DNA of 63,910 nt, filler included, from Neoconidiobolus thromboides FSU 785 (taxonomy: Eukaryota > Fungi > Entomophthoromycota): NCBI GenBank assembly GCA_025603075.1. It is 6 parts of 6 records of this genome, joined end to end, with 100 filler letters (N's around TTAATTAATTAA, not from the genome) between each part and the next. Parts side by side here need not be neighbours in the genome. Positions count along the whole stretch, not along the records: positions 56,953 to 61,334 come from MU626788.1; positions 61,435 to 62,714 come from MU627001.1; 4 more parts are not named here. One strand, given 5' to 3'. Made by a program: the position numbers and the translations under genes. Below, one piece after another: positions 56,953 to 61,463 of the stretch (positions within the stretch are counted from its first letter, which is position 1; each line of letters starts with the position of its first letter). The notes below the pieces were generated by a model. That model did not search any database. It saw only the letters and a program-made list of their open reading frames with translations, and was not told the DNA's origin.

Positions 56953-57250
56953 TCCTAGAAAGCTATATTGATGCTAATATGATGATACCATTTGGTCTGA
57001 CTGTAGACACTGAATGGGAACTATTAGAACAAAAAGATAAAGAATTTACTGAAGATCGATTTCAATCTATGGAGATGTATTTTTATGTTTAAGAATCTTA
57101 CTAACAAATTTTTCGCTCAAATAGTGCTTAAAAGATGGAAAAAGTGATGAAGCCAAAAAAAAACACCTTTCTATATTAAACCTTCATGATGGATATGCTA
57201 CAGGTTTCCCTATCAACTCAAAGTATGGACCATTTGCTTTAAAAAATTAA
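56953..57250 (+). pseudogene. 3' end of an ORF interrupted by a MITE
   Basis: Removing the MITE and one CTAT restores LESYIDANMMIPFGLTVDTEWELL...FQSILNLHDGYATGFPINSKYGPFALKN*. Confidence 0.55.
57071..57170 (+). mobile_element. ~99-bp MITE copy
   Basis: TSD CTAT/CTAT. Confidence 0.88.
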
Positions 57251-58449
57251 TGTTACTTATTATGATCAGAATATATGCTCATAAACTTAAAAATAAATTT
57301 TCGTATGATATTAGTTTACATCGCTCCTTTCACATATTTAAAGTGAATTAATTTTAAAAGTAACTATGAGAGGCTATCCTAATTGGTTTCAGAATTTAGA
57401 AATTAATCCAAATTTTAAAATTTTAAATTTGTGTCTAATATGATGGTTAAATCTAAAAAGCCTAAAATTAAATCTCTCTACTTAAACTTATTTTAATTAT
57501 TTCCTTTTCTTAAATAGCTAATTTTCCTAACTATATGTTTTGTTAGTTGTGTTAGATATTTAATAGATATAATATATAACTATATGATTATGTAATTATA
57601 TAAATACAGTTAGTTGACTTTATTTTTCGTTGAAGTAGAAATAAAAATAAAATGCAAACTTTCATAACTAAACATCGAAATGGAATTTTTGAAAATTTCA
57701 TTACAATAGGGAGGAGTACACAATATAAACATTGTAAGTCATTCACATCAATTTTAAGAGCTAATTATAACAATCCAAGGCTTATGTAATTTTATAATAA
57801 AACAAAAAGAGGAAAGATATACTATCAAAGTTTACTATCGATAATAATAAACTTAATCAACCAATGTATAAAATTAGTGCTTTAAGGGAAACAGGAAACA
57901 AAAACCAACAAGTAGCATTATTATCAACTATAGCTTCAGTATATTCTTTTGATGAATGTAAAAATATTGGGTTTAATATAAATAGAAATCAATATGATTA
58001 TTCAAAAATAAGTAATAATAATAAAATATCAACATTACAACTTATTATTAAAAATACAAAAAAAATCAAAGACTAGCAAATTGAAACTATTATACAATAT
58101 TTAATAAATCAATGATATATAGTAAATATTTTAATGATCTAAAAGATAAAGCAGTAGCTAGGTCAACATTTTTTAAATATATACCAAGTGATTTCAAAAA
58201 TCCAGCAAGAAAAACGGATCTATGTAATATATGTGCTCAGTATACAGTTAGAAAAAAGTTATTTGAAAATAAAATAAATACAGCAATTAAAAAACAAAGC
58301 AGAGAGATAGAAGAAATTTTCAATGAAGAAGAAAAATTATACAAATTACATAAATTCTGTGTTGATACTCAAAAAAACACATTTAATGAAACTATTAAAA
58401 AATTAAATAATAGAAGTTGTATAATGATTTTAGATTTTAAACAAAATAT

Positions 58450-58547
58450 GGGGATGTTTTTTTTGTCTTCATTACTTTTTCCATTTTTAAGCACTATTTG
58501 AGTGGAAAGATTATCAGCAAAATTCTTAAACGAAAAAATACATCCTC
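58450..58547 (-). mobile_element. MITE inserted in the transposase
   Basis: TSD ATAT/ATAT; the empty site reads DFKQN-M-EIGTKP. Confidence 0.95.
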
Positions 58548-58711
58548 ATATGGAAATAGGAACAAAACCAGATTCAATAAATTTAGGTCATTATAATAAA
58601 CAAGCTATATCAGTATTAGGTTTTAGTGTTTTATATTTAAAAGATGATAAAACAATAGGCAAAGTTTACTTTGATTATTTATCTGAAATATTGAATCATG
58701 ATTCAGCATAT

Positions 58712-58810
58712 GGGGATGTATCTTTGTGTTTAAGAATTTTACTAACAAATTTTCTGTTCAAATAGTGCTTAAGAAATGGAAAAAGTAATGAAGTCTAAAA
58801 AAACACCCCC
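58712..58810 (+). mobile_element. MITE inserted in the transposase
   Basis: TSD ATAT/ATAT; the empty site reads HDSAY-ARDCL. Confidence 0.95.
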
Positions 58811-61463
58811 ATATGCAAGAGATTGTTTAATCGACTTAATCTTTACAGAGCTTTTATTTAAAAAGTTCACAAAAATTAATATATGGGCAGATACAGGAAA
58901 CCGAAACCATTTTAGATCCCAAGAGTTCCTACATTATATGTTTAAAGAAATTCATAAAATAAATAGTAGGTTGAATGCTAATTTTAATTTTTTTGCTGAG
59001 CATCATGTAAAAAGTCTAGTTGATGGACATTTTGGAAACCTTTCAAAACGGAAAAGTAGTTTTGAAGCGTTAGATAAAATAGAAGATATCAATCAATTAG
59101 TTTCAAGATTTGAGGCTTTTATTTGCGAGCATAATAAAATTAATAACTCGACTGTTAATAATGTGAAAACAGATACAATTTTTAAAAAGTATAAAAGAAA
59201 CAAAAATATAAAAAGAATAATAGAGATGCAGGGCATTAAGAAGTATTTACACTTTATTAAATATAACAATAAACTACATTGTTACCCAGTATCCGATACA
59301 TCAAAAAAAAGCGATATAGTTTCAATTAAAGTTATAGAGTCTATAGAAAATAGAAAAATTAAAAGATCAATCCCAGCTTACCTTACGAAGATAACAGAAA
59401 ATTTAAAAATTTCGATATTTACTAAGCAAGTAAGTAGTTTGTTAAATGATAGAAATAGATTATTAAATATTACTTAAGCTACTAATAACTAAGTTAATAA
59501 ATAGTCAAAGAACAAGTAACTGTAATAATATGTAAAAACTATTATTACTTGTACTATATAGGGATGATTAATTATAGTTTTGGGGCTAACCACTCCCTCC
59601 CATCCAGCTATTTGTTAACTTGGCAATATATTAATAATGTAATTATAATATTAAAATAGTTTATTTATTTGATAGCAAATCTACAATGTTGGTTATAAAG
59701 CAGTTGAAAATAAATATTTCTCAATAAAGTTTTATAACAATATGTATTTAAGATCTAGTAGAAATTCAACTAACTTATAGTATAAACTATAATAGAATGA
59801 TTTAGAACTATGTCTAAGTACTTTTGTCTTAATAAAAGATTTGATTTTATAGAATTTTAAGCGAAGTTTTTAAAACACAAAATTTTTCAAAAATTGGATA
59901 AAATAATGAAACTAATTCAGACAACCCCATGGAGCTTAAGTTTTATATCTAGATTGTCTTTAAGCCCAGATTATTTAGCCTATTTTTATTCCAATTTCTT
60001 TGGCTAACGTTAATTTTCCAAGTGTAATGATAATTATTCTTTTAATATTTTTGTAATACCTTTTTAAACATGTAAAAATATTAAAATTTTTTAATTAAAA
60101 AGACTTCAAATAAAACGAATCTCTAAAATTATATCATTAAAATCATATTTAACATGAAAACTACAATATTTATCTTACATATTAGAATATCTCAAAAATT
60201 GATATTGAACCAAAATCTATTTTACATTGTTTCTCCTCTTTTGATGCTCCTCTTTTCAAAGCGTTTATACCAGAAGTTTACCATGAACTAGAAGCTCCTA
60301 CTATGGATACCATTTTCCATTCTTGTAAAGGCTACTCACCTTCTGGTTTTTTTGTAAATTTCTATATGGTAACTTATTTACACTAATTATTTTGAAATAG
60401 TATACATATATTATAAATAACATGTATATTAATTGTAATCCAAAAATAACTTATAAATCTGTTGATTTATATATTTCAAATAATTATATAAGTATTTTTT
60501 AGTCAAATCTCAATAATGAGACAATTTTTTGAATTTTTTACTTCAAGTGTGTTTGATTATTCAAGTTTTGACTAAGTATTTTTAATAAATTAATATACTG
60601 TAAAACAATATAGACCTTTTTAAAAAAATACTATTTACAGTAAATGATAAAACTGCGAGTTATAATGTCAAGTTCAAGAACCTCTGATTTAAAATAATGA
60701 GTTAAATTTTCTAATTTATTTGAACTTAAGTTTCTGAATTTTACAGGGCCAGATAAAAGTAAAGTAAAAAAACAAATATCTTCCTAACTTTCATATTAAA
60801 ACAATTCCGGAAATTGAATCTTGAATAGAAACTAGCCCATATAGATTGATATGTTTTATTACTTGATAAGCTAGAATACAACGAGTACTAATCAAACTTG
60901 TTCTATTTTCTCATTTTTAAAAATTTCTACAGTAAGAACCCATGAATTTCGCTTTAATTCTCTTTATCAAGAATTAAAAAAACCGGCAGAATGATGTATT
61001 ACAATAAGAGCTTTCTAAACCCAAGTTAAAAAATGGATAGTATATAAGCGAAATAAATGACTTCAAAGTAATTTACAAACTTTTGAATAAGAATTATGGA
61101 TTTATATCTTTTACACAGTGGTAATCAAGAAAATTATCATTTTTCACCATATTGTATACGTATCCAAATGGCTATAAAACATAAAGTAACACTTGTTTTT
61201 GTTAATTATCCTAAATATTGAATATCTTTTTAGAATCTTGATTTCAATGAGGTTAAATTAACTTTTAAGGATGTTAATGATACTATATTAAATCTAACGT
61301 AATAAATAAATAAGCTGTTAATATTTAGTATTAANNNNNNNNNNNNNNNNNNNNNNNNNNNNNNNNNNNNNNNNNNNNTTAATTAATTAANNNNNNNNNN
61401 NNNNNNNNNNNNNNNNNNNNNNNNNNNNNNNNNNTTTTATATTTATATTTATACTCAATTTAG

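Follow-up and report, generated by a model that had tools for sequence, protein, structure and literature searches.

A decayed Sola2-type DNA transposon of Neoconidiobolus thromboides, probably hit twice by a miniature element of its own or a sister family

Sola2 transposons have been described in the dictyostelids Dictyostelium fasciculatum and Polysphondylium pallidum, where they carry 12–22-bp inverted repeats and 4-bp AWWT duplications (ATAT, AAAT, ATTT) (Bao and Jurka, 2013, PMC3627910), and MITEs (miniature inverted-repeat transposable elements) of Sola have already been catalogued in insects (PMC5199201). In this study, we analyzed a stretch of 63,910 nucleotides (nt), filler included, from the entomophthoromycotan fungus Neoconidiobolus thromboides FSU 785 (GCA_025603075.1), hereafter the window. 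One piece of it, at positions 56953–61334 (MU626788.1; 24% G+C), contains at 57370–59928 on the plus strand an element of 2559 bp, or ~2354 bp without the two MITEs that lie inside it. We are confident that this locus is a decayed autonomous Sola2-type cut-and-paste transposon that was hit twice by a MITE from its own or a close-sister family, as argued by its protein homology, by ends that match in register and by edges in sequence depth at ~57394 and 59930. To our knowledge Sola2 is little studied, and we know of no Pfam model, solved structure or demonstrated transposition for it. What the locus adds is a new Sola2 family together with its MITE, and it is ordinary in kind.

The dictyostelid elements and the one described here are alike in their short inverted repeats beginning with G and in their 4-bp AT-rich duplications. 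They differ in build, since the dictyostelid elements are 10–15 kb long, include a Fanzor gene and occur in few copies, whereas the window element is ~2.4 kb long, encodes the transposase only, is present in hundreds of copies and appears to have spawned a MITE. Closer parallels for the pairing itself are found in Ping/Pong with mPing and in Tc1/mariner with Stowaway, where likewise a short derivative without coding sequence has retained the two ends of its parent, makes the same duplication and outnumbers it. The window pair differs from these in belonging to another superfamily, in using a 4-bp ATAT target rather than TAA/TTA or TA, and in that its mobilization in trans is deduced.

The transposase gene is interrupted by the two MITE copies. 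MITE1 (98 bp, 58450–58547, minus strand) lies between ATAT at 58446–58449 and ATAT at 58548–58551, and MITE2 (99 bp, 58712–58810, plus strand, thus opposite in orientation) between ATAT at 58708–58711 and ATAT at 58811–58814. An earlier reading of this stretch (the original prediction) had reported two 99-bp MITEs here; both are present, MITE1 with a length of 98 bp. Each insertion, counted with one ATAT, disturbs the gene differently: MITE1 adds 102 bp, which is in frame but carries a stop, and MITE2 adds 103 bp and shifts the frame. When both are removed in this way, the stretches 58112–58449, 58552–58711 and 58815–59477 (all plus strand) join into 1161 nt, an uninterrupted frame of 386 codons and a terminal stop, so that the single frame proposed earlier for 58112–59477 holds, and copies of the element without the MITEs exist elsewhere in the genome. 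The first of these three pieces carries a CxxC motif (codons 58223–58234) and a first aspartate (Asp) in LDFKQN (58433–58435), and the third carries a second Asp in WAD (58890–58892) and a third in VDGHF (59022–59024), in agreement with the CxxC and the three candidate catalytic residues named in the original prediction. That prediction had taken the restored frame for the transposase as such. It is the core only, as an N-terminal domain is found upstream at 57801–58073 (plus strand), in an open stretch closed by a stop and in a frame differing from that of the core; phmmer matches it to family members with E values of 2e-5 to 5e-3, always in their N-terminal parts. As far as the transposase reading frame shows, TAA, TAG and TGA are all in use as stop codons in this genome.

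Conserved domain models matched none of the three pieces of the reading frame in Pfam or NCBIfam, the third piece gave only noise against sequences of solved structures, and an exact look-up of the 233-amino-acid open reading frame (ORF) of the window in public assemblies found it not on record. An exhaustive HMMER search with the third piece, however, retrieved 183 relatives (best E value 6e-17; 33–40% identity, none above 50%), and the full-length ones, 400–640 amino acids long, align across the entire reconstructed protein. The nearest are metagenome and Logan proteins and proteins of Smittium, and those that carry a name belong to Smittium and Furculomyces, where they are called "hypothetical proteins" and occur in multiple copies. 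Conserved blocks of the family read TD.C..C..G.K, DFKEN, LGF, SHD, WSD.GPHFR and N.F.E.HGKS.VDGHFG. In the family alignment (A1), 90% or more of the sequences have the second and third Asp, and the Asp of DFKQN is also conserved in the family. A structural model of one relative (P0007; mean predicted local distance difference test score 85) resembles IstA, MuA, Mos1, ISCth4 and retroviral integrases in their RNase H-like cores and, in AlphaFold DB, matches proteins labeled "integrase catalytic" or DUF7869. An Asp-Asp-Asp triad on an RNase H-like core was thus found, with a catalytic role that is predicted.

The assignment to Sola2 in particular comes from the order of the conserved blocks. The dictyostelid proteins Sola2_DFa-2 and Sola2_PPa-1, PPa-4 and PPa-5 have in common STF.K..PS..K...TD.C..C, DFKEN, S.LG, LNH.S, W.D...HF(K/R)S.E.L and HGKS..D.HF..LS, and all blocks together with the N-terminal motif are common to the window protein, Sola2_DFa-2 and Sola2_PPa-1 in the same order (PMC3627910 supplement). 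Set against the published sequence, with the window second in each pair, these read STFYKFVPSDVK...RTDTCPYC and STFFKYIPSDFK...RKTDLCNIC, MDFKEN and LDFKQN, VLNHCSSY and ILNHDSAY, FWSDGAKHFKS and IWADTGNRNHFRS, and YHGKSDVDRHF and HHVKSLVDGHF; identity within blocks is roughly 35–55%, as judged by eye. What had been called Sola-like can be sharpened to Sola2 on these ordered blocks, matched by eye, and on the 4-bp AT-rich duplications.

The one Pfam model that comes near the family is DUF7869 (PF25273), which gives weak matches in a few members over the region from the second to the third Asp and is carried by neighbors in Atlas and AlphaFold DB. Its matches stay below the gathering cut-off (best 20 against 26 bits, in 4 of 29 members of the A1 alignment and one further relative), with none in the window pieces, and to judge from the sequences it is a distant relative and not the family's own model.

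Other superfamilies were considered and rejected. Tc1/mariner and piggyBac do not fit flanks of ATAT, CTAT and AAAT, and Pfam gave no match to DDE_1, DDE_3, Transposase_1 or DDE_Tnp_1_7; the check suggested earlier against superfamilies that target TA or TTAA therefore turned up no such transposase domain, together with flanks of 4 bp. For Zator, the flanks fit 4 bp, and no match to PF07592 was found in the ORF pieces or in 39 relatives, that model appearing only among structural neighbors of a DUF7869 cluster. Zator reportedly makes a 3-bp duplication and has a transposase related to the bacterial family PF07592, in a description said to go back to Bao et al. in 2009.

Relatives in the Harpellales fungi Smittium and Furculomyces provide a second comparison. 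Their proteins are 33–40% identical to the window protein over the core and have the N-terminal domain in common with it. Three Smittium copies (L003–L005) delimit elements of 3.4–3.6 kb of common sequence with GGGT(G/A)ATCCCAA inverted repeats, flanked by AAAT/AAAT, ATAT/ATAT and AAAT/ATAT. Their ends differ from those of the window element beyond the first GGG, and their GC content is higher (31–35%). The Logan contig that encodes the second-best match, which is also the closest full-length relative (P0002), begins ATAT|GGGTCA. Across the systems compared, the termini begin GAGG and GGGG in the window element, GGGT in Smittium, and GAG or GGA in the DFa families. In two of the Smittium loci (L003 1–40 and L004 1575–1600) the left duplication comes immediately after the right end (...ATTACCC) of a further copy, so that the elements are arranged head to tail and have a single 4-bp site in common.

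The termini of the window element tie it to the MITE. Its left terminal inverted repeat (57370–57405, plus strand) begins GAGG, and its right one (59893–59928, minus strand) begins GGGG when read inward. A sliding-window comparison of the two ends (20/28) did not rise above shuffles, and an in-register test running 36 nt from the two termini was used in its place. The null for this test, roughly 7400 36-mers from the piece, has a mean of ~11 matches and a maximum of 21. The two ends of the element match at 20 of 36 positions, a score reached by 0.03% of the null. Higher scores were obtained against the MITEs: the right end of the element matches the right ends of MITE1 and MITE2 at 25/36 and 24/36, respectively, and its left end matches the left end of MITE1 at 23/36. 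For the left ends of MITE1 and MITE2 together the range is 19–23/36, the left end of a third copy (M0, described below) gives 18/36, and the remaining pairs of MITE and element ends score lower, down to 14/36 for the mis-cut right end of M0. Once gaps are allowed, the MITE aligns with ~45 nt at the right end of the element and with ~39 nt at its left end. The MITE keeps ~40–50 nt of each element end. Since the in-register matches stand above the null, the MITE is an internal-deletion derivative of the element's own or a close-sister family. The original prediction had matched the two over 8 nt, and the homology now reaches 36–45 nt, with 23–25 of 36 positions matched where the null reaches no more than 21.

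The MITE itself is known here from three copies. The third, M0 (100 bp, 57071–57170, plus strand), was missing from the earlier list; it lies between CTAT at 57067–57070 and CTAT at 57171–57174 and interrupts a neighboring ORF. Pairwise identity among the three is 80–84%, their inverted ends begin GGGG, GGAG or GAGG, and the two ends of a copy match each other at 18–22 of 36 positions. All are short (98–100 bp) and non-coding with inverted ends and 4-bp flanks, and sequence depth over them is several thousand times that of single-copy DNA. Elsewhere in the genome, contigs of four DNA runs show ATAT next to the MITE ends and then unrelated AT-rich sequence. The MITEs thus have the 4-bp AT-rich (AWWT) duplication, as ATAT twice and CTAT once, while the flanks of the element are imperfect. 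A scan of metagenome contigs with the conserved MITE core returned 0 matches. Another reading of the ATAT flanks takes TA with a single base of the element at either side, and would make the MITE a Stowaway-like Tc1/mariner derivative with TGGGG...CCCCA ends, unrelated to the Sola2 element. A 4-bp duplication is favored over a TA or 3-bp one because the C matches on both sides of M0; CTAT on both sides fits 4 bp and not TA with T...A ends, and the alignments of other copies include all four ATAT bases. With MITE ends that match a Sola2 element, and relatives of that element flanked by AAAT/AAAT, we regard such a Tc1/mariner origin as highly improbable.

Contigs of the four DNA runs (25–47 million letters of contigs per run) were aligned to the piece in order to gauge abundance. 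Summed contig depth is not a strict copy number, and only its order of magnitude is used. The right flank, from 60040 onward, is single copy, with one run giving a 1259-nt contig there at zero differences. Relative to it, depth is ~400–1000-fold over 57394–59930 in all four runs, and several thousand-fold over the MITEs. The element family is therefore present in hundreds of copies and the MITE in thousands. Four contigs from three runs, belonging to other copies with differing flanks, lose similarity to the window at 59929–59930, after the right end and the AT that belongs to the usual target, which places the right end where it had been drawn originally. A host gene family or an assembly artefact could be invoked for the 2.56-kb unit on account of its imperfect flanks and nothing else; a depth hundreds of times that of single-copy DNA, which in four runs drops sharply at the inverted repeat, relatives in other genomes whose borders consist of inverted repeats and 4-bp duplications, and the DDE transposase fold of a modeled relative make that reading practically negligible.

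The same contigs reveal sites without the MITEs. Contigs of other copies join 58445 to 58548 in four runs, skipping exactly 102 bp, and 58706 to 58810 in two runs, skipping exactly 103 bp, and loose contig ends read straight through both MITE sites. These empty sites are paralogous copies, not alleles. As the other copies skip a MITE plus one ATAT at each site, the element family exists without either insertion. Other copies also hold extra sequence at 58109/58111 (loose ends, runs X2–X4), so that the window copy has a deletion there (58109–58111, ~58110). At position 59008 nearly all other copies have G, which restores the conserved HGK (G231) that reads HVK in the window copy (59007–59009), and majority bases likewise restore the conserved residues N27 and W245. 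This argues that the family progenitor encoded a conserved transposase and that the window copy is dead. With two MITEs, the upstream deletion and frame break, and mutated conserved residues, the window copy is non-functional as judged from its sequence. Separately, 4 additional bases (CTAC or TTAC) follow 57395 in roughly half of the other copies, and many copies are short of 2 bases at 58301 and of 4 at 58285, from which it follows that subfamilies differing by such indels exist.

Several observations weigh against the Sola2 and MITE interpretation and should be taken into account. The comparison with published Sola2 proteins was made by eye and comes with no E value, and no Pfam model reaches threshold. 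No intact copy of the element was seen. The left edge rests solely on the in-register matches, is not fixed independently by other copies, and lies beside a region of low read coverage (57370–57393). The flanks of the element, ATGA at 57366–57369 and ATGG at 59929–59932, are alike at 3 of 4 positions; the near-duplication described earlier, around ends that match in register, is thus upheld, but the two differ from each other and from the ATAT type, and the earlier claim that element and MITE both use ATAT-type targets is borne out for the MITEs (ATAT and CTAT) and not for this copy of the element. Finally, the ends of the MITE are 64–69% identical over 36 nt to those of the window copy.

This last point bears most directly on parentage. 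Because the identity is only 64–69%, the true parent of the MITE may be a sister subfamily. The MITE could have descended from, and been moved by, a sister Sola2 lineage of the same genome, with the window element merely a target whose ends are alike by common ancestry. The MITE copies being 80–84% alike among themselves, and the different start sequences (GGGGATGT in the MITE; GAGGCTAT and GGGGTTGT in the window copy), would agree with this. However, both ends match in register, with the left end of MITE1 matching best with the left end of the element and its right end with the right, and the window copy is decayed and off the family majority at many sites, so that its ends understate how well the family matches the MITE. 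We consider a parent outside the element's own family unlikely, and the Sola2 element hit by a MITE of its own or a close-sister family remains the preferred explanation.

Under this explanation, the family transposase would bind the ends common to element and MITE, and would cut and paste both the full element and, in trans, the MITE, duplicating 4 bp at AT-rich targets. Two MITE copies would then have landed at ATAT sites in the transposase gene of the window copy and one in the neighboring ORF. Mobilization of the MITE in trans by the family transposase is what we infer from the common ends. The original prediction went further and held that the MITE had hit its own source. This does not stand, as the window copy is one of hundreds and nothing singles it out; MITEs number in the thousands, element copies in the hundreds and ATAT sites are plentiful, so that two hits on it are most simply chance. 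A MITE nested in a copy of its parent family is unsurprising because it is expected whenever both are abundant, and such nesting is ordinary in a small eukaryotic genome that is AT-rich and very rich in repeats.

All three MITE copies lie in ORFs, which raises the possibility that the 99-bp unit is a transposon-born intron ("introner") tolerated there by splicing. MITE2 (58718–58768) and M0 (57077–57127) have a GTAT close to the 5′ end and a TACTAAC box that is followed 15 nt later by TAG, and in-frame GT..AG combinations exist. No GT..AG pair removes the insert precisely, though, the in-frame acceptor positions differ between copies, MITE1 is antisense and has lost the TACTAAC box. Since the in-frame solutions are inconsistent between copies, this reading was not adopted, and we hold it to be very improbable. 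A broader scenario would be a Sola2 system that is still active and has given rise, in a genome of only ~25–30 Mb, to MITEs in the thousands and autonomous copies in the hundreds, with some coding insertions tolerated by splicing. It is a long shot; if true, it would offer the first experimentally tractable pair of Sola2 transposase and MITE, and possibly a route from transposon to intron in this lineage.

The Sola2 family and its MITE would be a sensible choice for the first functional work on Sola2, as the element is compact (~2.4 kb), the derived MITE is very abundant, and the majority sequence keeps those conserved residues that could be checked. There is also relevance for genome annotation, as several percent of this small genome may belong to the element family.

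Outside the element, transfer RNA scans of the piece (56953–61334) and of locus L001 found nothing. The neighboring ORF that contains M0 is represented by its 3′ end (56955–57247, plus strand), cut by the edge of the piece; deleting 57071–57174, which is M0 plus one CTAT, restores one frame that ends at a stop at 57245–57247, and the fragment had no match in Atlas. On the other side, the single-copy flank at 60053–61055 is found in runs X2 and X4 both as identical contigs and as a second version with ~7–12% differences, which may reflect a mixture or else a pair of haplotypes or subgenomes that have diverged.

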